From Hyalangium minutum (lineage in GTDB: Bacteria; Myxococcota; Myxococcia; Myxococcales; Myxococcaceae): 64,000 nt of DNA. The notes beneath the pieces were generated by a model that saw only the letters and a program-made list of their open reading frames with translations, was not told the DNA's origin and ran no database searches. The DNA lies in assembly GCF_000737315.1 (NCBI RefSeq), contig NZ_JMCB01000002.1:434001-498000 (forward strand). The letters run 5' to 3'. Shown one piece after another: positions 1 to 12,906 of the stretch (within the stretch, counting starts at the first letter, position 1; each line of letters opens with the position of its first letter). The translations under genes and the position numbers were made by a program.

Positions 1-471
1 ATTGGAGGGCACAAGAAGTTCGTGTTCGTCCCTCATGCCCTGGAAGAGCGAGGTTACCTGACGCTCGGACACGCTCTTCGGGCCGGTGAATACGCCATCA
101 TCCAGACGCTCGAGTCCGACAGTGCCTACTTCGTCGAGCGGTGGAGCTATCCCGATGAGCAGCTCAGGGACAAGGCGCTCGAGTTCGTGAGGAAGTATTG
201 CAGGGACATCCTCATTGGTCTCTTCCGGTCCTCCGAACACGCGCCCCCTTCTCTCTTCTTCGCGCACCGGGAGCACGTGCACGTCGCGGCACACATCGTG
301 ATGGCGGACAGTCTCATCCACCCCAAACGAGGTTTTCCCATGCTGCTCGAAGTCGCGGATTCCTCCTGCAGGGGCGTGTTTGGCACGGACTCCTTCCAAG
401 GGCTTGTCCAGGACGCCTACACGCGCGCGGGTGGCAAGTACGAGTACTTCAACGAGCGGCACTGGCGGTAG
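1..471 (+). CDS. NurA-like (RNase H/PIWI-fold) nuclease, C-terminal part; 5' end lies outside the window
   Basis: Frame 1 is open from base 1 (IGGHKKFVFVPH...) to TAG at 469-471. C-terminal GFPMLLEVAD resembles the NurA GYPxxLxxAH/D motif. Ends 6 nt before a HerA ATPase, the usual NurA partner. Catalytic N-terminal Asp not visible. Confidence 0.6.
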   Translation: MGGHKKFVFVPHALEERGYLTLGHALRAGEYAIIQTLESDSAYFVERWSYPDEQLRDKALEFVRKYCRDILIGLFRSSEHAPPSLFFAHREHVHVAAHIVMADSLIHPKRGFPMLLEVADSSCRGVFGTDSFQGLVQDAYTRAGGKYEYFNERHWR

Positions 472-477
472 CGGGAG

Positions 478-2748
478 ATGGAAGACATGGCGGATGAGAA
501 TTTGCCGAAGTTATCGGGGGTATCCCAGGGCAACAGTCCCTCGCGAGCGGTGGGGGGAGATCCCCGAGAGGTTCCTCGCTCCGCTGGAGGGGGCCTGCCT
601 GAAAGGCCTGTGCGTCTGGGAGCCGCGGTAGGAGCCATGGGGCAAGGTCGGCCGCCTGAGGCGACGACCCTTCCGGCCGCTGGCACACGCCAGGCACCTC
701 GGCCCCCTGTTCGGGAGACTGCCACTCCGGGCAAGCCCGTACCTTCTCCGGCCGCGAGCGCACCTCGGAGCGAGTCCCCACGTCCCGCACAACCGGCAGG
801 AGTCCGGGCCCAGCAGCCTCCGCGGCCCGACGGCAGCCCCAAAGAGGTTCTCCAGAGGCTTCCTGAGGCGGAAGCCCATGCGTTCACCGAGCTGCGCTCC
901 CAGGCGAATGCGGCAGCGGCGGAACTGAACCCCGAGCTCGAGAACGCAGTGGGGTTCACTCATTTCGACACCGCGTCGAGCCAGGACAACCTCATCACCG
1001 TGCTGATGACGCGGGCTGATCTGCACAAGTTGCCCTCGCAGACACTCGTGCGGGTGAAGTCCCTGGAAGACAAGCGCTCCTACCTGGGCGTGGTCGTCCG
1101 CGGCCCCTTCTCCGAGCCGGATGCCGTGGCCGCCAACTCCAACATCGCCGTGGGCGTGGTCGTCCAGGGCAAGAAGCTCTCCTTTACCTTTGATTACCAC
1201 GGCCGGGCCGAGATCGAGATCCTTGGCGAGGAGAACGACGGCAAGGTGCTTCCCCCCGGCCACCGCCCGCGCCCCAAGAGCCCCGTCTTCCTGCTGGATG
1301 ACGAAGAGAGCGAGCACGTCCTGGGGATGAAGGGAGAACTGTGTCTTGGAATGGTCGTGGGCTACAAGCAGATGGAGGCGCGCATCGACGCCCTGGACAA
1401 GTCCATCCTGCCCCGCCATACGGGCATCATCGGGACCACCGGCGGTGGCAAGTCCACCACCGTCGCGACGCTCATCCACCGGGCCCAGTCCGCTGGAGTC
1501 GCCACCATCGTCTTCGATGTGGAAGGTGAATACACCCATGTGGACCAGGCCACCGACGAGCCGACGATGCTCGCGGCACTCCAGCGCAGGAAGCAGCGGC
1601 CCGAGGGGGTGAAGGATCTGCACATCCATCACCTGATAGGCCGTGACACCCGCAACCGCCGTCATAAGCACCGGCATCCCTTCGCGTTGAGCTTCTCGAG
1701 CCTCTCACCCCATGCCATCGCGGAGATTCTCGAGATGACGGACGCGCAGCAGGAGCGCTTCCACAAGGCCTACGAGGTCACCAAGCTGCTGTTGGAGGAT
1801 CTGAAGATCTTCCCGAAGACTCCCGAAGAGCAGCAGCAGTTGATGGAACTCGATGAGCTCTCCACGGGCTATCCGCGCATGACTCTCGAGCACCTCTTGG
1901 ATGTCGTGAGCACGTACATCTACGTCCTGAGCAGTGAGGGAAGGGCTGAGAGCAAGACCAAGACCAAAGGATCCTCCCGGCAGGCCCCGGTGCCCGGCGA
2001 GAACATCGAGGAGGGGGCCGTTGAGTCGGCACCCTCCCAAGGGCCTCGGCTCTTCAGCGAGTTCAAGGAGCACCTGCACCTGGTCTTCCGCCGCGTGCAT
2101 GAGCAGAGCAGCCGGAGCGAGGTGAGCTGGAAGGCCTTGTTTGGCAGGCTCCTGCGCCTGCGGCGCCTCAAAATCTTCGACGTGGGGCATGCACGAGGCG
2201 TGGATTACGACTCCATGCTGACCCCGGGGCGGGTGTCGGTGATCGATCTGTCGGACACAGACTCGCCCCAGCTCAACAATCTCGTCATCGCCGACATCCT
2301 CCGGGGGCTCCAGGAGCGGCAGGAGGAGCGCTACCAGCGGGCCCAGGAACAGAACCACCCCGTCGACCCGGCCCTCATCATCATCGAAGAGGCCCACGAG
2401 TTCCTCTCGGCCAGCCGCATCGCGCAGATGCCGGTGCTCTTCGAGCAGGTCGCTCGCATCGCCAAGCGCGGACGCAAGCGCTGGTTGGGGCTCGTCTTCG
2501 TCACCCAGTTGCCCCAGCACCTGCCCAACGAGGTGCTCGGCCTGCTCAACAACTTCATCATCCACAAGATGACCGACAGCACCGTCATCTCCCGGATGCA
2601 GAAGTCCGTGGGTGGGATCGACGAGAGCCTCTGGGGCCGCGTCCCCCGGCTGGCTCCCGGGCAGGCCATCGCCTCGTTCAGTTCCTTCAAGCGGCCTCTG
2701 ATGATCACCGTGGATCCCGCTCCCGTGAAGCGGTTGCTCGTGGATTGA
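478..2748 (+). CDS. herA: HerA/FtsK-superfamily ATPase (HAS barrel + DUF87 type) with a Pro/Ala-rich N-terminal extension
   Basis: Walker A GTTGGGKS, strand-2 VFDVEGEY, Walker B IIIEEAHEF, arginine finger/Q motif GRKRWLGLVFVTQLP. HAS-barrel-like region LVRVKS...YLGVV...PRPKSPVFL. RBS-like GGGAG before the ATG. Confidence 0.9.
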   Translation: MEDMADENLPKLSGVSQGNSPSRAVGGDPREVPRSAGGGLPERPVRLGAAVGAMGQGRPPEATTLPAAGTRQAPRPPVRETATPGKPVPSPAASAPRSESPRPAQPAGVRAQQPPRPDGSPKEVLQRLPEAEAHAFTELRSQANAAAAELNPELENAVGFTHFDTASSQDNLITVLMTRADLHKLPSQTLVRVKSLEDKRSYLGVVVRGPFSEPDAVAANSNIAVGVVVQGKKLSFTFDYHGRAEIEILGEENDGKVLPPGHRPRPKSPVFLLDDEESEHVLGMKGELCLGMVVGYKQMEARIDALDKSILPRHTGIIGTTGGGKSTTVATLIHRAQSAGVATIVFDVEGEYTHVDQATDEPTMLAALQRRKQRPEGVKDLHIHHLIGRDTRNRRHKHRHPFALSFSSLSPHAIAEILEMTDAQQERFHKAYEVTKLLLEDLKIFPKTPEEQQQLMELDELSTGYPRMTLEHLLDVVSTYIYVLSSEGRAESKTKTKGSSRQAPVPGENIEEGAVESAPSQGPRLFSEFKEHLHLVFRRVHEQSSRSEVSWKALFGRLLRLRRLKIFDVGHARGVDYDSMLTPGRVSVIDLSDTDSPQLNNLVIADILRGLQERQEERYQRAQEQNHPVDPALIIIEEAHEFLSASRIAQMPVLFEQVARIAKRGRKRWLGLVFVTQLPQHLPNEVLGLLNNFIIHKMTDSTVISRMQKSVGGIDESLWGRVPRLAPGQAIASFSSFKRPLMITVDPAPVKRLLVD

Positions 2749-2795
2749 GACCGCGAGACCGCTTGGACACATTCGCGCGGGTGCCCTGAGGAGAT

Positions 2796-2815
2796 CCCCC
2801 GAAAGGGGGGTATGC
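2796..2815 (+). repeat. 20-bp hairpin repeat, copy 1 (CCCCCGAAAGGGGGGTATGC)
   Basis: Read directly; 18/20 identical to 5176-5195. Forms a C5-GAAA-G5 stem-loop. Confidence 0.7.
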
Positions 2816-2825
2816 CCTCGATGAC

Positions 2826-2856
2826 GCCTTTCCTAGCTTGTTTGTCACTAGGAGGC
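2826..2856 (+). promoter_or_regulatory. Hairpin occluding the Shine-Dalgarno of the kinase-synthetase gene
   Basis: GCC-TT-TCCTAG (2826-2836) pairs with CTAGGA-GGC (2848-2856): 9 Watson-Crick pairs with a 2-nt bulge, covering AGGAGG at 2850-2855; ATG at 2861. Confidence 0.5.
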
Positions 2857-2860
2857 TCGA

Positions 2861-4495
2861 ATGTCGAAGGGAGAGCGGGTTCTTGTCATCTCGGGTCCGA
2901 TTGGAGCAGGCAAGAGCACGCTTGCCCAAGGACTCGTCGAGCGCCATGGAGCACATCGTGTCAGCTCTCGGGAGCTGTTGCTCGCGCGCATGGGAGAACG
3001 CAGTGGGGACCGGCGCACGCTCCAGGAGGCCGGTGCGGCGCTGGACCGCGAGACGGGTGGGCGCTGGGTGGCGGACAGCGTGAAGGAAGTCCTTCAGCGG
3101 CAGGAAGGACCGCCCCGTCTACTCATCGTGGACTCTGTCCGCATCGCATCCCAGGCCGAGGCGCTGCGAAGAGCCCTGGGGTCCCGGGTGGTGCATGTGC
3201 ACCTGTCCGCGCCGGAGCAAGAACTCGCGGCGCGATACGAACAACGGCGTTCGCGGGCGGTGTCCGACTCCGAGGGCACCTCGTTCGAGGAGGCCCGCGC
3301 CGATGCCACGGAGCGCGGAGTGGAGACGCTCGCGGAGTTCGCGGACCTGGCGCTGAACACACACCGGCATCCCCCCGAGGCGGTGCTGGTCCAGGTCGCA
3401 TGCCTGCTCGGGCTGTTTGGCCGAGACGTGGAGCGGCTCGTCGACGTGTTGGTCGGAGGCCAGTATGGAAGCGAGGGCAAGGGGCAGATCGCCTCCTATC
3501 TCGCGCCGGAATACGACGTCTTGGTGCGCGTGGGGGGGCCCAATGCCGGACATCGCGTGTACGAGGAGCTGGGGCCTTATACCTTCCACCAGCTTCCGTC
3601 GGGGACACGGGCGGCGCCTCGCGCGCGGGTGGCGCTGGGGCCTGGAGCCACTCTCTCGCTGACGTCTCTTCAGCAAGAGATCGCTGACTGCCGGATCGAG
3701 CCGGGGAGGCTCTTCATCGATCCCCAAGCGCTCGTCATCGAACCCTCGGACGTCGCGTTCGAGGAAGAGTCCTTGCGGAAGCAAATTGCGTCGACGGCAC
3801 AAGGTGTGGGGATGGCGACGGCGCGCAAGGTGCTGCGCACGGCGGCGAAGCCGCAGGTCCGGCTTGCGAAGGAGCTTGAAGAGCTGAGGCCCTTTCTCTC
3901 CCCTACGCGAGAGGTGCTGGAGGACACCTATGCGGGTGGCGGTAAAATCCTCGTCGAGGGGACCCAGGGGGCGGGTTTGAGCTTGCACCATGGGGATTAT
4001 CCGTATGTGACCTCGCGGGACACGACGGCGAGCGGGTGTCTGGCGGAGGCCGGCATTGCTCCAGGCCGGGTGCGTAAGACGCTTCTGGTATGCCGCACTT
4101 ATCCCATTCGGGTGCAGAACCCCGATGGAGGGGATGGCACCTCGGGCCCCATGAGCAGAGAACTTTCCTGGGATGAGATTGCCCAGCGCTCGGGCTTGCC
4201 TCTGGAGGAGCTGCTGACGCAGGAGCGTACCTCGACGACGAAGCGGCAGCGGCGAGTCTCCGAGTTCGATTGGAGCCTGCTGCGCAAGGCTGCCGCGCTC
4301 AATGCCCCCACGGACGTGGTGCTGACCTTCGTGGACTATCTCGCCGCGAGCAACAGGTCCGCCCGGCGCTTCGAGCAATTGACCCCAGAGGTGCACCACC
4401 TCATTGAAGGCATCGAGCGGGTCGCCCAGGCCCCGGTGTCGATCCTGTCCACGGGCTTTGGTTTTCAGAACATCCTCGACAGGAGGGCGTGGTGA
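2861..4495 (+). CDS. Fusion of an N-terminal P-loop (d)NMP-kinase-like domain and a short PurZ/archaeal-type adenylosuccinate synthetase-like domain
   Basis: Kinase: GPIGAGKST, RRTLQEAG, LIVDSVR. Synthetase (about aa 194-544): GGQYGSEGKG, GGPNAGH, IASTAQGVG, EGTQG...HHGDYPYVTSRD, RTYPIRV, STTKRQRRV, LTFVDYL. Confidence 0.9.
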   Translation: MSKGERVLVISGPIGAGKSTLAQGLVERHGAHRVSSRELLLARMGERSGDRRTLQEAGAALDRETGGRWVADSVKEVLQRQEGPPRLLIVDSVRIASQAEALRRALGSRVVHVHLSAPEQELAARYEQRRSRAVSDSEGTSFEEARADATERGVETLAEFADLALNTHRHPPEAVLVQVACLLGLFGRDVERLVDVLVGGQYGSEGKGQIASYLAPEYDVLVRVGGPNAGHRVYEELGPYTFHQLPSGTRAAPRARVALGPGATLSLTSLQQEIADCRIEPGRLFIDPQALVIEPSDVAFEEESLRKQIASTAQGVGMATARKVLRTAAKPQVRLAKELEELRPFLSPTREVLEDTYAGGGKILVEGTQGAGLSLHHGDYPYVTSRDTTASGCLAEAGIAPGRVRKTLLVCRTYPIRVQNPDGGDGTSGPMSRELSWDEIAQRSGLPLEELLTQERTSTTKRQRRVSEFDWSLLRKAAALNAPTDVVLTFVDYLAASNRSARRFEQLTPEVHHLIEGIERVAQAPVSILSTGFGFQNILDRRAW

Positions 4496-5169
4496 GCGGG
4501 ATTCGCGCGGACGACTTCTCCGAACGCTTTCCCCTCCTCTTTCACATGGCGGAGGCAGGGAGCTGGCCGAGCATCCAGCGCCATGGGCTGCTGAGCACCT
4601 CGGCGCTCCTGGACCTCTTCGAGGTGAGGGGCGAGCAGCGGGTGGCCTTGGAAGCACGGCATCGGCCCGAGTCTGTCACGCTCTATCACCCCCGGCACGG
4701 GACTGCGGTCGTGCGAGACCAGAAACCCATGGATGATGCAGGGCTGCTGCGGAGTCTGAGCGGCGGACTGTCTCCAACGGATTGGTACCAACTGCTCAAT
4801 GCCCGGGTGTTCTTCTGGGTCACCCACGAGCGGCTCACGAAGCTTCTCAATGCCCGAGCGTACCGGAACAAGCGGCAGACGGTGCTGACGCTAGACACCG
4901 CGCGGCTGCTGGCTCGCCATGAGGCGCGCGTCATGCTGTCCCCACTCAACAGTGGAGCGACGAAGCCATCTGCATGGCCTCGTGGACCGGACACCTTCCT
5001 GCCGATGGTGCGATACCCGTTCTCTTCTTGGGACCAGAGGCGCAAGCGCCGGGATCCGGTGGTCGAACTGACCGTCACCTATTCCGTGCCCGACATCAGG
5101 GACTTCGTGCTGCGAGTCGAGGAGTACGCGGGGGGGAAGCCAGACACGCTGTTGTTCAAGGCCAGGTGA
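4489..5169 (+). CDS. DarT-like ADP-ribosyltransferase-fold protein (DUF7002-like)
   Basis: LFHMAEAGSWPSIQRHGLLS matches the DarT N-terminal YHxTxxxNLxSIxxxGLLS pattern; central VFFW; C-terminal VVELTV carries a candidate catalytic Glu. GTG start overlaps the upstream stop (translational coupling). Confidence 0.65.
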   Translation: MVSGIRADDFSERFPLLFHMAEAGSWPSIQRHGLLSTSALLDLFEVRGEQRVALEARHRPESVTLYHPRHGTAVVRDQKPMDDAGLLRSLSGGLSPTDWYQLLNARVFFWVTHERLTKLLNARAYRNKRQTVLTLDTARLLARHEARVMLSPLNSGATKPSAWPRGPDTFLPMVRYPFSSWDQRRKRRDPVVELTVTYSVPDIRDFVLRVEEYAGGKPDTLLFKAR

Positions 5170-5175
5170 GTCACA

Positions 5176-5195
5176 CCCCCGAACGGGGGATATGC
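5176..5195 (+). repeat. 20-bp hairpin repeat, copy 2 (CCCCCGAACGGGGGATATGC)
   Basis: Read directly; lies 6 nt after the ART stop and 52 nt before the next ATG. Confidence 0.7.
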
Positions 5196-5247
5196 GTCTC
5201 TGCCTCGGGTCTCTAATTTGTGTCCTGAAGCAACCCAGGAGACGTCA

Positions 5248-5442
5248 ATGGCGACCGGAGTACAGGAGTTCAAGACGGGTGAGAAGTGCGAGACCAAAGG
5301 CAACTACGCGTTCGTTCGGTACGTGGACAATCCGCAGACCCCCCTTCCGACAATCAATGAGCGGAACATTCCTCTCGACAAGGGGGACACGTTCCCTCCC
5401 ATCAAGTCTCAGAACAGGGCAGCTTGGTGGAGGCTTACCTAG
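5248..5442 (+). CDS. Small YjzC-like protein (64 aa)
   Basis: AGGAG RBS then ATG 5248. FKTGEKCETKGNY...LDKGDTFPP...WWRL resembles the YjzC pattern (KxGEKAPxxGxY...LxKGDxFP). Confidence 0.65.
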   Translation: MATGVQEFKTGEKCETKGNYAFVRYVDNPQTPLPTINERNIPLDKGDTFPPIKSQNRAAWWRLT

Positions 5443-5502: not shown

Positions 5503-6774
5503 CTACCGGCAGGGGTAGTTGGACTTCGTGCAGGTGACGCCGGAGTTATACGAGTCGTTGAAGTGGGCGTAGTACCCGTCATAGAGCGGGTGCGTCGTCC
5601 CGGTCTCGCCCGCCAACTTGACGAAGATCTCCTCGTTCTCGTTGAGCGCGTCCTGGGACCAGTTCTGCGAGCCCGTGTACACCCGGTACTGGTACGCGGA
5701 GCCGTACTTGCCGTACACGAGGAAGAACTTGTCGTGCACCTTGTCGTGCCGGCGGATGTTCACCCCCGCATCCAGCAGCGAGTTGTAGACCGACTGCGCC
5801 ATGTCGATGCCGTCGGTCGAGTTCCCGCTCACCACCATCCACACCGCGCAGCCCCCGTTGCGGTAGCGCAGCACCTGGTTGAGTAGCTCCGGGCGCCCCG
5901 TGGTGACGAACGCCATGCCAATGCGCAGGCGGCAGTTCGCGTCCGGCGTGACGTCGTTCAGCCGCGTGACGATGGTGTCCGTCTGGCCCACGGCCTCGGG
6001 CGAGGCGTAGACGTCCGCAGGGTTGGACAGGTAGTAGCCCCGGCCGCTCGCCGAGTCGTAGTAGTCATTGTTGGCGTAGTGCCGCCGGTTCCACATGTCC
6101 GAGAAGTGGGCGTTGAGCCCGTCGTACAGCGTGACGGCGTCATACACGGTGATGGCGTTGTTGGACGCATCCGGTCCGCTCGCGTACGTCAGGTTCGATG
6201 AGCCGAACCAGGACACGTTCGGGTAGAGCACCCCGCTGGGATCCGTCGCCTGGCTGAACGTGAACATCTTCGTGTGCATATTGCCGGCGCTGCTCGTGCC
6301 GATGCAGCCCCCGCCACCACTCGCGTTGGTGCAGAACTTCGCGTTGGCGATCTTCTTGAGGGTCGCCACCGCCGGATCCGTGGAGGCTGCGTTCTTCCCA
6401 TCCAGCACCAGGGACACAGAGACGCCCCGCGTCTGCGCCGCCAGCAGCGCATCCGCCACGCCATCAATGCTGATGGAGTGAATGGCGCCCCGGATGGTGC
6501 CACCCGCGGGCGTGCTGTGGATGAGCCGCTTCAGCTCGTCCGTGATGGTGTAGTCCCGGCCCGAGAACGCGGGCGGGTTGCTGAAGTGTGCCCAGACCCG
6601 CTTGCCGCCCACCGTCCCCGTCGCGGAGCTGATCCCCGCCTGAACGACGCCGGTCTCCTCGCCCAGGAGCTCTTCTTCCTCGGGAGAGCGAGGCGCGCAG
6701 GCGGTGAGCGCCGCCGCGCTGAGAGCCACTGCCAGTGCCTGCAGAACCGCCTCAATGTTTGTCCGCGAACGCAT
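5503..6774 (-). CDS. Phospholipase D-superfamily lipoprotein with two HxK modules
   Basis: Start MRSRTNIE at 6774 follows GGAGG; lipobox LTAC; HTK...GSSN and HDK...GSQN motifs. The ORF-track extension to 7182 is upstream read-through. Confidence 0.8.
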   Translation of the reverse strand: MRSRTNIEAVLQALAVALSAAALTACAPRSPEEEELLGEETGVVQAGISSATGTVGGKRVWAHFSNPPAFSGRDYTITDELKRLIHSTPAGGTIRGAIHSISIDGVADALLAAQTRGVSVSLVLDGKNAASTDPAVATLKKIANAKFCTNASGGGGCIGTSSAGNMHTKMFTFSQATDPSGVLYPNVSWFGSSNLTYASGPDASNNAITVYDAVTLYDGLNAHFSDMWNRRHYANNDYYDSASGRGYYLSNPADVYASPEAVGQTDTIVTRLNDVTPDANCRLRIGMAFVTTGRPELLNQVLRYRNGGCAVWMVVSGNSTDGIDMAQSVYNSLLDAGVNIRRHDKVHDKFFLVYGKYGSAYQYRVYTGSQNWSQDALNENEEIFVKLAGETGTTHPLYDGYYAHFNDSYNSGVTCTKSNYPCR

Positions 6775-6867
6775 CTGCTCCCTCCAGGGGCTCGACAACC
6801 CGAGAAAGCCAGAATCACGGAGATAATGATAAATCAAGTGCTCCAGGAGCCGGTGACTTTCGATATT

Positions 6868-6886
6868 GAAAATGAGAACCATTATC
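6868..6886. promoter_or_regulatory. Fur box
   Basis: GAAAATGAGAACCATTATC is 16/19 to GATAATGATAATCATTATC, in an AT-rich gap upstream of hmuY; a partial box GATAATGATAA lies at 6822-6832. Confidence 0.8.
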
Positions 6887-6976
6887 AAATAGGGTCGCGG
6901 CCCGAAGTCTTCCTCTCTCTGCACACGCCCCCTGGACAGGACTGTGGCCATGAACTCCTCCACCGAAGTGAGACCG

Positions 6977-7735
6977 ATGAATCGCGAGACCCGAGCCCGA
7001 TGGGTATGGGCGATGATGATGATGTCGATGGTGCCGCTGTGGGCAGGCTGCGGCACGGACGACGAGCCCGAGCCCGCACCGAAGTGTGAGGCCAGCGCCG
7101 TGCGGTGCACCGAGCAGAGCATCGACCAGCTCGACCTGCTCACCACCGTGTCCACGGGAGAGATTCGCGAGGAGGGAACCACCTCCGGCCAGTTCCATAC
7201 CTATGTGGATGCTCGCGCGGGCGGGCTCACGCCCACGCAGTCCTATACCTACGTCAGCTTCACCGAGCAGGGGCTGACCCGGGTGTCGGTGGATGATCAG
7301 GCGGCACTGGCGTCGACGGACTGGGACATTGCCTTCCGCCGCTTCGTCATCCGGGTGAACAGCGGCGTCTCGGGGCCCTCCTGCGTCTCCGTGGCGCAGG
7401 CCCCGGTGGGCACGACCTTTGACTCGGTGACCCGGGTGGACCCCGCGTGGCAGTTCCGCACGGAGAACTACTTCACGGAGACCTGCGAGCTCGTCGAGGA
7501 CGACACCGGCATCGGCGCGCCGGCCGCGGTGATGGGCAGCTACTGGTCCTACGAGAGCTGTCTGGTCATGACGGGCAACGTCTTCGTGCTGCGTCTGGCC
7601 GACAGCCGCCACGTCAAGGTGCAGGTGACGAGCTACTACGAGCCCTCGGTCCAGGAGACGTGCAACCAGACGGGGAGCGCGACCCAGCCGAGCGGCGCGG
7701 CGCAGTTCCGGGTCAAGTGGGCCTTCCTCCCGTGA
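6977..7735 (+). CDS. hmuY: HmuY-family heme-binding lipoprotein
   Basis: Lipoprotein signal ending WAGC; WDIAFRR and VKVQVTSYY motifs; Fur box upstream. Start could be 6944 or 6950. Confidence 0.8.
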   Translation: MNRETRARWVWAMMMMSMVPLWAGCGTDDEPEPAPKCEASAVRCTEQSIDQLDLLTTVSTGEIREEGTTSGQFHTYVDARAGGLTPTQSYTYVSFTEQGLTRVSVDDQAALASTDWDIAFRRFVIRVNSGVSGPSCVSVAQAPVGTTFDSVTRVDPAWQFRTENYFTETCELVEDDTGIGAPAAVMGSYWSYESCLVMTGNVFVLRLADSRHVKVQVTSYYEPSVQETCNQTGSATQPSGAAQFRVKWAFLP

Positions 7736-9201
7736 GGTGGGCGGCGCTGGCGGTCCTCGCCTTCGCCGGGTGTGGCCCGGGCCACTCAGCGCCCGAGCCA
7801 CATGACCGCTCACAGGCCGCGTTGTTGGCGGAGAGCCGGCCGACCTCTCCGTCCTCGAGCCTGCCGCGCTTCGAGGCCACCGAGCAGGTGGAGTCCGTGG
7901 TGTCCCCTGGGGCGCATTTCCGCATCCACTTCACGCGCAGCGGGCCCAATGCGGTGAAGGCTGCGGATGCCGATGGCAATGGCATCCCGGATGCGGTCGA
8001 CATCGTGGCTCGGACCTACGATCGGGTCGCGGCCTTCTACGCGGGGCTGGGCTACCTGCCTCCGCCCGAGGACTCCTGGCTGCCGGGAGACTTCGGCGGA
8101 GACGGGCTCTTCGATGTCTACCTGTTGGACTTCGCCGGGCGTGCGGACGGGGCGTTCCGGACAGATGGTTGCCAGGGCGCGGAGAGCCAGTGCTCGGGGC
8201 ACATGCTCCAGGAGAATGACTTCACCGGGTACAGCTACCGCTCCTATGAGGAGGCGGTGGACACGCTGGCCAGCCATGAGTTCTTCCATGCCGTGCAGGC
8301 CGCCTACCACCCCAACCTCGGGAGCGTGGCGGTGGAGGGCACCGCGGTCTGGGCGACGGAGCGCTTCGCCCCGGCCTTGGAGGATCTGGAGCAGTTCTCC
8401 TCCGCGTACCTCGATCGGCCGGATCGCAGCCTGGTCGTGGATCCCGACGGGCCGGGCAGCTTCTCCTACGGCTCCTCGCTCTACTTTCAGTTCTTGAGCG
8501 AGCGCTTCGGAGACCGGCTCATCCTGTCGATGTGGGAGGAGAGCGTCCGCACCCCCAGCGTGCGCTGGCCGGCGCTGGTGGATACCGTGCTGCGCCGCGA
8601 TTCGGGCGCGGACTTCGACCGTGCCTTCGCGGAGTTTGCCCAGTGGAACATGGCCACCGGTTCACATGCCCGGCCGGGCCAGGGGTACGCGCGCGGCGAG
8701 GGCTATGCCGAGCTCACCTCCTCCTCCAAGACCTTCCCAGTGGATGAGCCCTCGGTGCGGGTGGCTCCTGCCTCGACGCGATACTTCGAGGTGGCGGGAG
8801 CACAGAACATCTCCGTGAGCTTCCAGCCCACGGATGATGCGGAGACAGGGGCGCTCCACCTCCTGGTGGCAGTGGTGGGCCAGGACGGCACGCTCCAGGT
8901 GACCCGGGCGGACAGTCCAGGGGCTCTGCTCGCCCAGGTGTCCGCGCAGGGTGCCTCCCGCGTGCTGGTGGCGGTCGTGGATGGGCGCCACCAAGGGCTG
9001 GGGCGGTACGGGCGGCTCTGCATCACGGACACCGCCACCGGCTCGCCTTGCGGCGGGGACGCTCCCTCCGATGGCGAGGACAAGGACACGGGCTGCCAGT
9101 CAGCCCCCGGCGGATGGACGTGGTGGCTGTCCTGGCTGGTGCTGGCCGCTGGCGGGTACCGCCCCCTCCGGAAGCGGTCTCACCTCGAAGCTTCGCGCTG
9201 A
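7732..9201 (+). CDS. MXAN_6640-type secreted zinc metalloprotease lipoprotein with a MYXO-CTERM-like tail
   Basis: GTGA overlap with hmuY; lipobox FAGC; HEFFH zincin motif followed by EGTA; C-terminal GCQSAPGG + hydrophobic stretch + RPLRKR. Confidence 0.75.
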   Translation: MRWAALAVLAFAGCGPGHSAPEPHDRSQAALLAESRPTSPSSSLPRFEATEQVESVVSPGAHFRIHFTRSGPNAVKAADADGNGIPDAVDIVARTYDRVAAFYAGLGYLPPPEDSWLPGDFGGDGLFDVYLLDFAGRADGAFRTDGCQGAESQCSGHMLQENDFTGYSYRSYEEAVDTLASHEFFHAVQAAYHPNLGSVAVEGTAVWATERFAPALEDLEQFSSAYLDRPDRSLVVDPDGPGSFSYGSSLYFQFLSERFGDRLILSMWEESVRTPSVRWPALVDTVLRRDSGADFDRAFAEFAQWNMATGSHARPGQGYARGEGYAELTSSSKTFPVDEPSVRVAPASTRYFEVAGAQNISVSFQPTDDAETGALHLLVAVVGQDGTLQVTRADSPGALLAQVSAQGASRVLVAVVDGRHQGLGRYGRLCITDTATGSPCGGDAPSDGEDKDTGCQSAPGGWTWWLSWLVLAAGGYRPLRKRSHLEASR

Positions 9202-10229
9202 GAGGCCGTGGCGCTCACGCCCCGCTCCACGAAGCGCTCGAGGGTTGCCCGGATCTGCGCGCGCATGTTGGCGGCCGATTCGGGCTTTCCCTCGCGCTGG
9301 CGCTGCCGGTAGGTCTCCGCGAGCGCGAAGAGCTCCTCCGAGCGCCTCCGCCCCTCGGCGTTCTCTCTCATCGTGAGGTGGGGATGGGCCTGGAAGAGGG
9401 CGTGCCACTCCTGGCGCACCTCGCTCCAGAAGCCCTGCGTGTCCGTCCAGTAGGCGCTCGCCTCGGGCAGGCTCTGGGCCTCCGGCAGCCGGGTGTAGAC
9501 GTTGAGTCCCCGCTCCCGTACCAGCGCATGCGGCACCGGGCCGAGCACCACCTTCAGGCTGTCCTGCTCGTGCACCCAGCCCGTGGGCGTCAAGGCGTGC
9601 CGGTTGGTGCCAGTCAGGACGTCGTAGTCGCTCCGCTTCGTGTACTCGCGGCGCGGCAAGGGGCGCCATGTCTCGCCGGACTGCCAGGAGGACACTCCGC
9701 GAGCATGGGTCCAGCGCCCCGAGCCCTCATACCGAGGCCCATCGTCGACCTCGAACACGGCTTGGCTCCACGTACACCGGGCCTCCGCCGGGGACAGCGC
9801 ATGGTGCTCCCATGACTGGCGGCCGCGAAACTCGAGCAACTCGGTGTCCTCGAACGTCCAGTCCTGGCGCCAGTGCTTGAGGGGCGCTGGCTGTCCGTCT
9901 TTCGTCACCACCAGGATGTGCTGGAGCGACACGCGCCCCGGCGTGTCCTCCACCACCCCCACCCACTCCGTCCCCGTGGTGCGGTAGGGAGCCCGCGGCG
10001 TGTAGCCCTCGCTGAGGCTCACCGTCTCTTCAAAGGCGAACTCCACCCGGTAGCTTCCCGCCATGCGAAGAATCGCGGCCCTGTCGCGCTCCGGATCACA
10101 CCCCTCTGCCGCCGGCGCTTCCACCTGGACCGTGGGGGAGATGCTCCGAGGCGCGCAGGCCAGGGTCAGTGTGAGCAGGGCCCAGCGCGGCACAGGGCTC
10201 CTCCGTGGCTCCGTTGTGTGGAACGTCAT
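9180..10229 (-). CDS. DUF6607-like lipoprotein
   Basis: DRAAILRMAGSYRV, HWRQDWTFED, PLPRREYTKRSDY and GWVHEQD motifs; in an operon with hmuY and the TonB receptor. Confidence 0.7.
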   Translation of the reverse strand: MTFHTTEPRRSPVPRWALLTLTLACAPRSISPTVQVEAPAAEGCDPERDRAAILRMAGSYRVEFAFEETVSLSEGYTPRAPYRTTGTEWVGVVEDTPGRVSLQHILVVTKDGQPAPLKHWRQDWTFEDTELLEFRGRQSWEHHALSPAEARCTWSQAVFEVDDGPRYEGSGRWTHARGVSSWQSGETWRPLPRREYTKRSDYDVLTGTNRHALTPTGWVHEQDSLKVVLGPVPHALVRERGLNVYTRLPEAQSLPEASAYWTDTQGFWSEVRQEWHALFQAHPHLTMRENAEGRRRSEELFALAETYRQRQREGKPESAANMRAQIRATLERFVERGVSATASQREASR

Positions 10230-10306
10230 GGGATGCCCTCCGGTTGAGATGGGAAGCCGGTGTTGAAGGTGTGAGCTGTCACTTCATGGGCGTGCGTGTC
10301 CCAGCC

Positions 10307-10963
10307 CTATCCTTGAGGGGCAGGCGGCTTCACGCTCCCCCAGTGGAGCTGGAACATCGCTGGGGTCCCTGCCGCGTCGTAGTAGGACAGGATCCGCACC
10401 TTGAAGTAGGCGCCCTCATCCGTCCGGACGACATAGAGCATGCTGCGCGGCGAGAGCTGGTGCGTCCTCGGGTCGTAGCTGTACCAGGCCGTTCCCGACT
10501 CGAAGGCGGTGTCCGGGTCCGTGTTCTCGTCGGCACCATCCTCCGCGTCGGTGACGTACCCCTCCGCGGGGGCTTGGCTCACCTGGGCAAAGTCCGCGTC
10601 CGCAAGGATGGCCGCCGCTACGGCTCCGCTGCCATTCACGCCTCCCCGGACGCGGATGTGAAACCGCTGGAAGGCCAAGTCCCACTGCTTGTCCTCGGTC
10701 CCCTCTACCTGCTGACGCTGATCCAGGTCGAAGCCGATCCACTTCTCCGAGCTCGTCGCGTCGAGGGTGGTGGTGAGGGTGCCGTCGCCGTTGTCCACGT
10801 GGCGGATGTTCGGCTCTTGCGGCGCGTTGCCAGGATCCTCGATGTCGGGAACGTCGTCGGGATTCGGCTGGAGGTCCGGGCCACAGGCCGCCAGCCACCC
10901 CGTGAGGAGCAGCACCGAGGCGAGGGGACGGCGGAGCGCGGGGCGAAGGGGCAGGGCACGCAT
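10307..10963 (-). CDS. hmuY: Second HmuY-family lipoprotein
   Basis: Start MRALPLRP; lipobox LAAC; WDLAFQRF and YFKVRILSYY motifs. Confidence 0.8.
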   Translation of the reverse strand: MRALPLRPALRRPLASVLLLTGWLAACGPDLQPNPDDVPDIEDPGNAPQEPNIRHVDNGDGTLTTTLDATSSEKWIGFDLDQRQQVEGTEDKQWDLAFQRFHIRVRGGVNGSGAVAAAILADADFAQVSQAPAEGYVTDAEDGADENTDPDTAFESGTAWYSYDPRTHQLSPRSMLYVVRTDEGAYFKVRILSYYDAAGTPAMFQLHWGSVKPPAPQG

Positions 10964-10992
10964 GCGAGTCACCTGAGGGAAAGCGAGGAGCA

Positions 10993-12906
10993 TCAGAGCT
11001 GGAAGGACAGCCCGGCTTGGAAGGTGCGAGGCAGGATGGGCAGATCCGTGGTGTTGCCAGTCGCGGTGAGGTTGGAGCCGGCCACGAAGAGGCGGAAGCC
11101 CGCGGGGAGCTGCTGAGAGGCGCGGGCGTCCAGCGAGACGTAGGGGTCGGACTGATACGGGTCCGCGGTCCCATCCCCGTCCACGTCCGGGTAGAAGGGG
11201 CGGGGGCCCACGAGCGCGCCGCGCACCCACGCCTCCAGTCCCCAGGGCCGGAAGCGCCAGGTGGCCTGGGCCGTGAAGCGGTGGCGGGCCTGGCCCTCCA
11301 GGGGCTCTCCGGTGGTCTGATCCCTGCCGACCGTGAGCGTGTAGCTGGCGTCCACGGTGAGGCCGCCGGGGATGCGCTGGCGCAGGCCCACTTCGCCTCC
11401 GCGGACGCTGGCCCGCTCGAGGTTGGTGTAGATGAAGTGCTGCCCCTCCGTGTCTTGCCGGAGCGAGATGGTGATCATGTCCCGCAGCGAGTGCTGATAG
11501 CCACTCAGCCAGAGCAGAGTCGGCGCGGCGGGCCGCAACTCCACGGACAGGTTCACGCTGCGGGAGCGCTCGGGCTGCAGGTCCGGATTGCCGCGCACGG
11601 TGTAGCCCACCGAGGGATTCTCGAAGTCGAGCAGCAGCTCCTGGAAGCTGGGCGCACGCAGCCCCCAGCCATAGCTGGCCCGGAGCGTGACGCGGGAATG
11701 CGGATCCAGCCGCAGTGCGAGCCGCGGCGTGATGGCAGGGCCGAACTGCGAGTCCAGATCGAGCCGCGCCCCCGGGACGAGGATGAGGCGCGGCTGGAGG
11801 AGCACCGTCCAGTTGTCCTGCACGTAGAGCGACGCGCGGCCCCGCTGCCCGCTCCCGCTGTCCAGCCGGTCCGCTGCGAGGTGCTCTCCGAGCAGCTCCA
11901 CGCCTTGGATGAGCACATGCCGCTCTCCGAGCTTCAGATCGAGCTGACCGCCGAGCTGGGCCAGCTGATCCCGCGTGTCCTCCACCGAGTCGAGCGCGGT
12001 CCCCTGGCGCTGGTCGAGCAGGTAGCGGCGCTTGAACCCCGTGTAGTACGCCTCCGTGCGGAGGCTCATCGTGTCACTGAGCCGCCAGGAGGGCGACAGC
12101 CTCACGGACAAGGTGTCATCCCGGCTGGCGCGGTCGAAGGTGGCGCCCGTCGCTCCGAGGTCGACTCCGCGCTGGACGCGCCGGGAGTAGGACAGCGTGC
12201 TGGCCAGCTCCGAAGACTCCCCGCGCACGTCCCCGCGAGCGGAGACCTGGAAGCCCGCGAGGCTGCTGCCCGTGGTGCCAATGTCCGCGGGCTCCAAATC
12301 GTAGGCATCGCGGCGCTGTAGGCCTCCACTCACCCGCAGGCCCCAGTCCTCCCGCTGCATCTCACCCGTGGCGTCCACGTCGGCCTGCCGCAGGCTCCCG
12401 TACGTCACACGAAGGTCGGCGCCGAGCGGGCGGCGGGCCCGGCGGGTGATGAGGTTCACCACTCCCGCCACCGCGTCACTTCCATAGAGGACCGAGGAGG
12501 GACCTTTGACGATCTCCACCTGCTCGATGTCCTCCAGAGAGATGCGGGACAAGTCCACCGCGCCATTGACGCGCCCGTTGACCCGCTCGCCGTCCACGAG
12601 GACCAGCGCGTACTCGGGCCCGAGTCCCTGCACTTGGAGGGTGGCCCCCGAGAACGTGGACTGCACCTCCAGCCCCGGCTGGGCGCCGAGCAGCTCCGCG
12701 ACGCTCTGGGCCCCACTGGCCACGATCTCCGCGCGGGTGATGACCTCGGTCGCGACCGGAGTGTCCTCCAGCCGCTCGGGAGAACGGGCGGCCGTCACCA
12801 CTGTCTGCGCGGGAGGAGCCTCCACGCCGCCGTCAGAGGGCTCCTCGCCCCAGGCCCTCCACGGAATGGCGACCGCCACGAAGAGAAGACACCAGCGCCC
12901 CGACAT
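10993..12906 (-). CDS. TonB-dependent receptor (heme/siderophore type)
   Basis: Plug motifs VVTAARS and IEQVEIVKGPSSVLYGSDAVAGVVNLIT; NPDLQPERS; C-terminal aromatic beta strand; Fur box upstream. Confidence 0.92.
   Translation of the reverse strand: MSGRWCLLFVAVAIPWRAWGEEPSDGGVEAPPAQTVVTAARSPERLEDTPVATEVITRAEIVASGAQSVAELLGAQPGLEVQSTFSGATLQVQGLGPEYALVLVDGERVNGRVNGAVDLSRISLEDIEQVEIVKGPSSVLYGSDAVAGVVNLITRRARRPLGADLRVTYGSLRQADVDATGEMQREDWGLRVSGGLQRRDAYDLEPADIGTTGSSLAGFQVSARGDVRGESSELASTLSYSRRVQRGVDLGATGATFDRASRDDTLSVRLSPSWRLSDTMSLRTEAYYTGFKRRYLLDQRQGTALDSVEDTRDQLAQLGGQLDLKLGERHVLIQGVELLGEHLAADRLDSGSGQRGRASLYVQDNWTVLLQPRLILVPGARLDLDSQFGPAITPRLALRLDPHSRVTLRASYGWGLRAPSFQELLLDFENPSVGYTVRGNPDLQPERSRSVNLSVELRPAAPTLLWLSGYQHSLRDMITISLRQDTEGQHFIYTNLERASVRGGEVGLRQRIPGGLTVDASYTLTVGRDQTTGEPLEGQARHRFTAQATWRFRPWGLEAWVRGALVGPRPFYPDVDGDGTADPYQSDPYVSLDARASQQLPAGFRLFVAGSNLTATGNTTDLPILPRTFQAGLSFQL

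Follow-up and report, generated by a model that had tools for sequence, protein, structure and literature searches.

The DNA examined in this study is a 64,000-nucleotide (nt) stretch of Hyalangium minutum contig NZ_JMCB01000002.1 (positions 434,001 to 498,000), hereafter called the window, and the analysis concerns the five genes in its first 5,442 nt. These encode, in order, the C-terminal part of a NurA-like protein, a HerA-type ATPase, a fusion of a kinase-like domain with an adenylosuccinate synthetase domain of putative PurZ type, a DUF7002 protein with a predicted ADP-ribosyltransferase (ART) fold, and a YjzC-like small protein (Table 1). An earlier note on this DNA took them for one five-gene defence system, which was not borne out. 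Positions 1–5442 are two separable accessory cassettes, here called modules A and B, that are neighbours in one Cystobacterineae lineage (Hyalangium, Stigmatella, and metagenome-assembled genomes (MAGs) of Archangium and Cystobacter). Module A ends with the NurA-like and HerA genes. Module B (2796–5189) is a macrodomain-less myxobacterial form of a horizontally spread three-gene cassette, whose fusion and DUF7002 genes form an obligate pair.

The open reading frame (ORF) analysis of the window found all five ORFs, all on the + strand, so the co-orientation described earlier is confirmed, as is the overlap of the synthetase and ART genes, which share 4 nt (GTGA), or 7 nt if the GTG at 4489 is the start. 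The earlier 6-nt gap between the NurA-like and HerA genes holds with the ATG at 478, while the start in the source record, the ATG at 487, leaves 15 nt and fits better to GGGAG at 473–477. The tight spacing claimed for the five genes applies to two of the four junctions, which measure, in order, 6 or 15 nt, 112 nt (HerA to fusion), the 4-nt overlap, and 78 nt (DUF7002 to YjzC), and it fails at the HerA–fusion and DUF7002–YjzC junctions. The HerA–fusion gap is the boundary between modules A and B. The NurA-like gene begins 710 nt before the window and ends with TAG at 469–471; the whole gene spans 6430–7611 of locus L001, the same H. minutum stretch (contig JMCB01000002.1, GCA_000737315.1) with 7.1 kb added upstream, in which the window position equals the L001 position minus 7140. 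The fusion gene (2861–4495; 544 amino acids, aa) is preceded by AGGAGG. A scan with consensus promoters and terminators was uninformative, giving one promoter-like and one terminator-like site, no more than shuffles predict.

Table 1. Features of window positions 1–5442 (Hyalangium minutum)
Feature	Position	Strand	Basis and remarks
NurA-like RNase-H-fold protein, 3′ part (last 156 codons of 393 aa)	1..471	+	predicted fold; module A
HerA-type ATPase of the FtsK/HerA superfamily, last gene of module A	478..2748 (alternative start 487)	+	Pfam, PADLOC
Hairpin CCCCCGAAAGGGGG, head of the fusion leader, left edge of module B	2796..2809	+	conserved upstream of the fusion
Fusion, N-terminal P-loop domain resembling nucleoside-monophosphate (NMP) kinases, residues 1–190, Walker A Lys18	2861..3430	+	Pfam, PDB profile search
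Fusion, C-terminal putative PurZ-type (short, archaeal-like) adenylosuccinate synthetase domain, residues 191–544, Ser204	3431..4495	+	Pfam, NCBIfam, PDB
DUF7002 protein, 225 aa, DarT-like ADP-ribosyltransferase fold	4492..5169 (GTG start)	+	PF22531, Foldseek
Second hairpin copy CCCCCGAACGGGGG, head of the yjzC leader, 7 nt past the DUF7002 stop	5176..5189	+	pattern scan, leader alignment
YjzC-like small protein, 64 aa (74 aa from TTG 5218)	5248..5442 (ATG)	+	PF14168

Relatives of the fusion were scanned for in one genome per species, and of at least 571 confirmed ones the best 80, all of them full-length fusions with 48–89% identity, were taken further; the gene neighbourhoods were compared over 81 loci. 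Fusions occur in Myxococcota, Acidobacteriota, Gemmatimonadota, Planctomycetota, Verrucomicrobiota, Chloroflexota, Eremiobacterota, several Pseudomonadota, a Synergistaceae genome (Synergistota), and the archaea Nitrosopumilus and Cenarchaeum, with 48–58% identity across this spread of phyla. By tblastn with the window proteins, DUF7002 adjoins the fusion in 75 of the 81 loci, and three apparent exceptions carry a divergent DUF7002, which brings the adjacency to 78/81; one further locus ends at a contig edge. No other effector was found in the DUF7002 position at any of the 81 loci, and about 18 of the pairs overlap by 4 nt. In a Bryobacterales MAG (L031, 10004–12277) the kinase, synthetase and DUF7002 even form a single ORF of 757 aa with Pfam matches to all three, a single case in which a sequencing error at the stop codon is possible. 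This adjacency is far beyond chance and makes the fusion and DUF7002 an obligate two-gene unit, so the earlier suggestion that synthetase and ART belong together stands. A design like that of the cyclic-oligonucleotide-based antiphage signalling system (CBASS), with a signal and a swappable effector, was considered and rejected, because the loci seemingly without DUF7002 carry divergent DUF7002 genes.

Clustering of the flanking ORFs revealed a third component that the earlier note had overlooked and that is absent from the window. In 68 of the 81 loci a gene of about 455 codons lies near the fusion, mostly directly upstream and co-oriented, and its product is an IrrE/ImmA M78 peptidase fused to a SCO6735-type macrodomain. 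The macrodomain profile matched 2afc/2fg1 (3e-49) and Streptomyces SCO6735 (2.5e-45), also the ALC1 and TARG1 macrodomains, and the M78 part matched IrrE and CapP structures. For SCO6735, cleavage of thymidine-linked ADP-ribosylation on DNA has been reported (PMC9411070). The canonical cassette thus joins an M78-macrodomain gene, the kinase–PurZ-type fusion and a gene for a DarT-like ART, and so resembles the DarTG layout with one enzyme more. Beyond these three genes there was no conserved neighbour, the next commonest cluster being present in 8/81 loci. Nitrosopumilus (L034) and Cenarchaeum (L065) have the full three-gene cassette, at about 8500–12250 in both loci, with fusions about 48–49% identical to the bacterial ones, and its presence in these two thaumarchaea indicates transfer between domains. 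Neither the 64-kb window nor the myxobacterial loci L001–L007 yielded a macrodomain when searched for one. Its absence from the window version argues that the ART is no simple constitutive toxin here, and that in the two-gene myxobacterial form it would be restrained otherwise, with the fusion as the only candidate.

DUF7002 matched PF22531 (8.5e-76) as its sole Pfam family, and no match to the DarT profile (DUF4433) was obtained. Its sequence found nothing in the PDB (E ≤ 10), PADLOC or NCBIfam, and it was placed by fold comparison only. The AlphaFold model, with a predicted local distance difference test score (pLDDT) of 92.1, retrieved ADP-ribosyltransferases exclusively in Foldseek: DarT1 (8baq) came first (E 1.2e-3, probability 0.99), followed by DarTG (7omu), cholera toxin A1 and Tpt1/KptA. 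The DarT-like ART proposed earlier is therefore supported by the predicted fold, for which DarT1 and DarTG are nearest. Candidate catalytic residues H18, F107-F108-W109 and E192 are invariant, with FFW where DarT has its Tyr motif. A 2025 survey of Legionella in BMC Genomics described an ART-like family, Lmac_3114, with Hxx, FFW and xxE motifs and DarT/Tpt1-like similarity, which co-occurs with an adenylosuccinate synthetase domain in about 60% of cases and for which regulation via purine and NAD+ supply was proposed; a Pseudomonas aeruginosa variant has a NUDIX gene in addition (PMC12522546). From the shared motifs and context, DUF7002 is almost certainly this Lmac_3114 family.

The N-terminal domain of the fusion matched Pfam AAA_33 (3.6e-10) and AAA_18 (2.3e-9), and the nearest structures in the PDB profile search were adenylate kinases and AdkA-like NMP kinases (E 1e-7 to 1e-5). 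Its residues G12, P13, G17, K18, T20, D91 and R94 are invariant across phyla. The C-terminal domain matched Pfam Adenylsucc_synt (PF00709, 5.4e-53), and in the PDB archaeal PurA 5k7x (6e-47), PurZ0 7vf6 (8.5e-34) and PurZ 6fm1 (1e-32). Against NCBIfam it remained below the cut-offs of both PurA models (NF003295, 9.7e-81 and 271 bits vs. 368; TIGR00184, 181 bits vs. 396) and of PurZ (NF038379, 3e-64 and 217.1 bits vs. 300). Two features point to the PurZ type. In the P-loop the window protein reads GSEGKG, compared with GSEAKG in PurZ0, GSTGKG in phiVC8 PurZ and GDEGKG in PurA, so that Ser204 takes the place of the PurA catalytic Asp (Asp13); and the insertion RVQNPDGGDGTSGPMSRELSW, which follows a conserved PIRV and ends in Trp, aligns with the PurZ insertions. 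In S-2L PurZ the Ser reportedly contacts the substrate, and the insertion is among the features tied to the absent stabilisation of ribonucleotides (PMC8342488). Ser204, as the earlier note had it, is correct, and together with the rest of the synthetase catalytic set it is invariant in 15 fusions from distant phyla; all 35 cellular and 45 viral sequences compared carry the P-loop Ser.

A neighbour-joining tree was built from 36 cellular fusions, five full-length fusions from viral contigs, 40 kinase-less viral homologues, and the PurA proteins of Pyrococcus horikoshii and Escherichia coli. All Ser-type sequences formed one clade without P. horikoshii PurA in 100/100 bootstraps, and the full-length fusions (36 cellular and 5 viral-contig) were monophyletic, also in 100/100. 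Viral sequences by themselves were monophyletic in only 27/100, and the cellular fusions fell inside or beside the viral kinase-less PurZ-like sequences, not with archaeal PurA. The PurZ-like synthetase of the earlier note is thus borne out by the P-loop Ser, the PurZ insertion and the Ser-type clade shared with viral PurZ. Because its scores fall under the curated cut-offs of PurZ and PurA alike, the synthetase appears from its sequence to be PurZ-type yet a separate family. About 75 IMG/VR contigs (viral loci L090–L164) carry the kinase-less PurZ-like genes, all with the P-loop Ser and 33–42% identical to the window synthetase. Full-length fusions make up 5 of the 80 viral-contig matches, three of them with DUF7002 and two also with the M78-macrodomain gene; DUF7002 had no match in 50,697 cultured phage genomes.

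The separateness of modules A and B is evident from their distribution. HerA is present in 4/81 fusion loci, and the NurA-like, sigma-like, helix-turn-helix (HTH), M78 and YjzC genes in 3/81, all of them the closest myxobacterial relatives. Melittangium boletus has the same flanks as Hyalangium (a GerE regulator, a haem-oxygenase-like gene and an acetyltransferase), with the fusion and DUF7002 directly after the acetyltransferase, and its sigma/HTH/M78/NurA-like/HerA cassette is found elsewhere on that chromosome, 2 Mb from the pair. When the spacers are aligned, module A stands out as a cleanly bounded indel between Hyalangium and Melittangium. The Melittangium spacer matches in its left half the Hyalangium acetyltransferase–sigma spacer, and in its right half about 70 nt lying between herA and the fusion. 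In Stigmatella aurantiaca the composite of A and B occupies the same syntenic site, without YjzC. Since all composite loci share one syntenic site, a single juxtaposition was inherited within a lineage. Homologues of NurA-HerA and YjzC thus rarely co-occur with the fusion, being found with it only in one myxobacterial lineage (4/81 loci and Stigmatella), whereas fusion and ART do co-occur. Cloning the five genes as one system would mix two independent cassettes, and module A is worth testing alone.

The YjzC-like protein matched PF14168 above its cut-off (1.7e-9, 38.3 bits vs. 25). Among the 81 loci it occurs only in the three closely related L001–L003, and in Stigmatella and Melittangium none follows the pair. 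YjzC is a lineage-specific bystander whose gene has a leader element in common with that of the fusion. In detail, a leader of about 80 nt is common to the fusion gene (2796–2860) and yjzC (5176–5247) and aligns in three genomes. The shared pattern is a hairpin, CCCCCGAA[A/C]GGGGG, followed by TATGC...CTA..TTGT...AGGAG...ATG, and the hairpin pattern has only two matches in the 64 kb, exactly at these two leaders. About 70 nt of the fusion leader are conserved in Archangium, Hyalangium sp. and Melittangium, in the last without HerA upstream. The predicted fold pairs the Shine-Dalgarno sequence in both leaders, with a fold z of about −1.8, weakly better than shuffles, and no Rfam family matched the shared leader. 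Further along the window, positions 5503–7182 on the − strand encode a PLD-domain protein with two PLDc_2 repeats and a lipoprotein-like N-terminus, and past it, down to about 14500, lies a cluster of haem-uptake type with HmuY and a TonB-dependent receptor.

Module A extends upstream of the window, with the cassette spanning L001 4727–9888 (to window 2748). Co-oriented and overlapping genes precede the NurA-like one: a sigma-70-region-2-like gene (202 aa), a gene of 125 aa with marginal HTH matches (E 0.02–0.04), and a 244-aa M78 (ImmA/IrrE) peptidase gene (M78 domain 4.9e-13; PADLOC capP match 3.6e-9). For the NurA-like protein, sequence searches of Pfam, PADLOC and the PDB were all empty, no Pfam NurA domain being found; 20 of its homologues had no Pfam match either, and a profile of the 20 sequences found nothing in the PDB. 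Its AlphaFold model is of moderate quality (mean pLDDT 68.8), and the top six Foldseek matches were NurA or HerA-NurA structures (E 6e-6 to 5e-4), led by NurA 2ygk (E 6.4e-6), the HerA-NurA complex 9x1m and NurA 3tai. UniRef labels some of its homologues as NurA domain-containing. The putative NurA identity is accordingly supported by the modelled fold and the position before herA, not by sequence. The protein is unrelated to the M78-macrodomain protein of the three-gene cassette.

The HerA-type ATPase matched DUF87 (PF01935, 4.2e-22), HerA_C (PF05872, 7e-14) and TrwB_AAD_bind in Pfam, and PADLOC HerA models down to 5e-30. It has the Walker A motif of such ATPases. As it scores far under every NCBIfam HerA equivalog cut-off, it is a member of the superfamily and not a named orthologue. 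The first ~165 residues of its ORF (window 478 to ~970) are a Pro/Ala/Gly-rich sequence of low complexity. Stand-alone HerA homologues are shorter (653–678 aa in L167 and L165), and the N-terminal extension is either a disordered stretch or an over-long start call. The NurA-like protein has about 250 homologues, mostly in Myxococcota, and the five-gene cassette A was found at varied sites, in L165, L166, L167 and L171 besides L001. In Myxococcus hansupus it stands alone, interrupted by an insertion sequence element, and in a delta-proteobacterial MAG it stands alone among helicase/S24, SACS/NOV_C, HATPase_c_3, methyltransferase and PIN-antitoxin genes, which is a clear defence-type island. Module A is a candidate conflict system of its own, consisting of a HerA motor and an RNase-H-fold nuclease with their own regulator trio.

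The surroundings of the fusion–ART pair were also surveyed. DUF7002 with an adjacent gene annotated as adenylosuccinate synthetase was found on 14 plasmids, chromids or megaplasmids, in Rhizobium, Agrobacterium, Sinorhizobium, Ralstonia, Burkholderia, Caballeronia, Methylobacterium and Streptomyces. On the Burkholderia thailandensis plasmid NZ_CP141811.1 (L168, 1–11200) the pair lies amid an OLD/TOPRIM-UvrD pair, a Tn7-like DDE transposase/ATPase module, a PDDEXK nuclease and an integrase, an arrangement that looks like a transposon cargo region; on pAt1D132a its neighbours are an AAA-UvrD pair, an integrase and VapBC. We take the OLD/TOPRIM-UvrD and AAA-UvrD pairs near plasmid copies to be Gabija-like. 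In Sorangium, the pair follows a HerA-AAA_16 protein, a STAND-WD40 protein and an EAD1-trypsin protein. Among the 148 directly adjoining genes, sampled from 74 loci, are transposases, resolvases, Fic, RhuM, KAP, AbiEi and AIPR, also ordinary metabolic genes, and the strong PADLOC matches among neighbours are BilD (3), IetA (2), QatA, AbiEi and several PDC candidates. A proximity to defence islands, which had been put forward for checking, is suggestive for the pair, given these plasmids, transposases and PADLOC matches.

Compared with known systems, the pair is probably nearest to the ART/macrodomain conflict systems, and by sequence it falls short of the formal thresholds of both DarT and PurZ. 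Similar to DarTG, module B has a predicted ART fold nearest to DarT1/DarTG with a candidate H...E catalytic pattern, and in most lineages a macrodomain of the SCO6735 family in the same operon. It differs from DarTG in that its ART belongs to PF22531, has no Pfam DarT match and carries FFW for the Tyr motif, in that the macrodomain is fused to an IrrE/ImmA protease instead of to the C-terminal domain of DarG and is absent in the window, and in that a 544-aa kinase–PurZ-type enzyme is an obligate extra partner. With phage PurZ and PurZ0 the fusion shares the P-loop Ser, the insertion after a conserved Val, conserved Asp- and nucleotide-binding motifs, and the Ser-type clade. Unlike phage PurZ, it has an NMP kinase domain and an ART partner, is cellular or plasmid-borne, and scores under the NCBIfam PurZ cut-off. 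The architecture also resembles that of DcdV and the dCTP deaminases, since a P-loop kinase is fused to an enzyme that would rewrite the base of a (deoxy)nucleotide and a weak PADLOC dCTPase match was obtained (E 0.004), whereas module B has a synthetase in place of the deaminase and an obligate ART. Kongming is a defence system that signals through dITP; the likeness to it lies only in a non-canonical purine nucleotide as an immune signal, and the window proteins gave no deaminase or SIR2 domain matches in Pfam, PADLOC or NCBIfam.

Module A resembles the NurA-HerA end-resection complex in its HerA domains and in a predicted NurA-fold partner just upstream, and is unlike it in that the partner lacks a NurA Pfam match, in the sigma-like/HTH/M78 trio, and in being accessory and mobile. 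It differs from Sir2-HerA and DUF4297-HerA, as the partner is neither SIR2 nor DUF4297 by Pfam and PADLOC. Its putative small HTH gene (of the marginal match given above) followed by an M78 gene may recall CapH/CapP of CBASS and other defences, to which the sigma-like gene is extra. Nothing was found in the literature on DUF7002 by name, nor on a link of PurZ or adenylosuccinate synthetase to anti-phage defence or HerA, and no paper was found that treats the kinase fusion as regular, points out the PurZ signatures, or reports archaeal copies or a protease-macrodomain partner. The earlier statement that no described system combines these parts has to be qualified, since the ART–adenylosuccinate synthetase association itself appeared in the Legionella survey of 2025, with no function assigned (PMC12522546). 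The family of that survey agrees with ours in motifs, the ~60% synthetase co-occurrence and taxa, and its identity with PF22531 is drawn from motifs and context. It was described without mention of PurZ signatures, of a regular kinase fusion, of an M78-macrodomain gene as partner, or of copies in archaea and a defence-island setting (PMC12522546).

Taken as a whole, the locus is probably best explained as cassettes A and B side by side, with YjzC as a bystander and module B as a DarTG-like, NAD+-dependent conflict or anti-phage module. In such a module the ART, as the effector, would arrest growth by ADP-ribosylating nucleic acid, with DNA bases as the likeliest target. Where the macrodomain is present, as in the canonical form, it would take the ADP-ribose mark off again, and the M78 protease fused to it would be the switch. 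The fusion may convert deoxyguanosine monophosphate (dGMP), aspartate and a nucleoside triphosphate into N6-succino-2-amino-dAMP, as PurZ does, and its kinase domain may phosphorylate an NMP of the same pathway. Because dGMP is scarce unless DNA is degraded, the fusion would act as a substrate-gated sensor or transducer, a gate whose product licenses or feeds the ART; the deoxyguanosine pool would be depleted and corrupted along the way. We infer the defence function, DNA as the target, dGMP as the substrate, and the coupling of a nucleotide product to the ART. In this form the idea of the earlier note, a non-canonical purine nucleotide produced by the fusion and coupled to the ART, is viable. 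A bolder proposal, which we regard as tentative and rather doubtful, is that the cellular PurZ-type clade, fused to NMP kinase and partnered with an ART, makes deoxynucleotides of the 2-aminoadenine pathway, either N6-succino-2-amino-dAMP or a phosphorylated or ADP-ribosylated form of it, in bacteria and archaea as an immune signal, an ART co-substrate or a DNA poison; the Z chemistry would then be a dGMP-gated part of host immunity, and the clade a possible relative or source of phage PurZ.

Several observations weigh against the conflict-module explanation. The Hyalangium flanks, module A aside, are ordinary genes, the haem-uptake cluster and the secreted PLD-like protein, and not defence-like. 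PADLOC v2 on the window proteins gave no match to the ART and only weak kinase-domain matches for the fusion, and the neighbour survey, which suggests a defence-island or mobile context, had no matched background and gives no formal enrichment. The Foldseek template-modelling (TM) scores of DUF7002 are low (0.37–0.40), and the docked NAD+ pose of the Lmac_3114 ART family is atypical (PMC12522546). For the synthetase, the best sequence relative among structures is archaeal PurA, the tree is a rough neighbour-joining one with two outgroups only, and the putative substrates of synthetase and kinase are deduced from the two PurZ signatures. The window version also lacks the macrodomain "antidote", which leaves the DarTG analogy incomplete.

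Among the other explanations, an unlikely one is that the pair is a toxin–antitoxin system whose antidote is the fusion, and that it serves mainly to stabilise mobile DNA or make the cell addicted to it, less to ward off phages. The fusion would sequester the ART or detoxify an ADP-ribosylated guanine nucleotide. Obligate pairing, translational coupling and the one single-polypeptide fusion agree with it, a fused DarTG polypeptide (7omu) is among the fold matches, the two-gene myxobacterial form needs some restraint of the ART, and the pair occurs on plasmids beside VapBC and partition genes. However, the fusion, with its 544 aa, keeps both catalytic centres unchanged across phyla, where a binding antidote would need less, and most loci already hold a macrodomain that fits the antidote role. 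It is quite unlikely that the fusion is instead a pool-corrupting effector similar to DcdV and dCTP deaminase, turning deoxyguanosine nucleotides into succino- or 2-amino-adenine ones, with the ART as an uncoupled, independent effector or NAD+ consumer. This would leave unexplained why the ART is never exchanged (78/81 loci) and why a triple fusion exists, although the combination of an NMP kinase with a base-modifying enzyme is alike and the kinase domain has the weak dCTPase match mentioned above. Expression of the phage Z cluster is toxic to E. coli (PMC8342488), and the NUDIX protein of the P. aeruginosa variant (PMC12522546) could supply dGMP, as MazZ does in phages; both would suit such an effector.

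That all five genes are one defence system, the nucleotide made by the fusion signalling to the ART or marking DNA for NurA-HerA, is very unlikely, and their distribution has largely refuted it. In its favour, they lie next to each other in one orientation in Hyalangium, Stigmatella, and the Archangium and Cystobacter MAGs, and the HerA–fusion spacer is short (73–112 nt), with no terminator-like site found in it by the consensus scan; but 77 of the 81 fusion–ART loci are without the NurA-like and HerA genes, the composites go back to one historical juxtaposition at one chromosomal site, module A occurs alone in Melittangium, Myxococcus and the delta-proteobacterial MAG, the module B leader is kept with or without HerA upstream, and YjzC is missing in Stigmatella. 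A housekeeping or RNA-repair role is highly improbable, whether the fusion is a purine-salvage adenylosuccinate synthetase or the ART a Tpt1/KptA-like phosphotransferase working with the kinase and an Appr-1''-p-processing macrodomain. Archaeal PurA is the best synthetase match, Tpt1/KptA is among the ART fold matches, and the macrodomain profile also matches ADP-ribose-1''-phosphate phosphatases (1.7e-10). Against this role speak the patchy distribution with ~50% identity between bacteria and archaea, the plasmid and island contexts, the replacement of the PurA catalytic Asp by the PurZ-type Ser in all members, the scores under every PurA equivalog cut-off, and an ART nearer to DarT than to Tpt1. 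Module B as a device by which a mobile element modifies its own DNA to Z-DNA was also considered and rejected, as there is no phage carriage and the copies are mostly chromosomal; phage PurZ pairs with DatZ, MazZ and DpoZ (PMC8342488), genes that were not searched for here. The explanation of module B as a DarTG-like, NAD+-dependent conflict module is the one retained.

To our knowledge, a PurZ-type synthetase has so far been known only as the phage enzyme for the replacement of adenine by 2-aminoadenine. The cassette is easy to find in hundreds of species and on plasmids, including those of Rhizobium, Agrobacterium, Burkholderia and Ralstonia, so that it is testable in tractable hosts, and an ART–synthetase cassette has been reported in Pseudomonas (PMC12522546). 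If the proposed function is true, it would be new chemistry in prokaryotic immunity, with a host-side PurZ-type synthetase wired to a DNA-type ADP-ribosyltransferase and a macrodomain, and Z-base chemistry would not be solely a phage invention.

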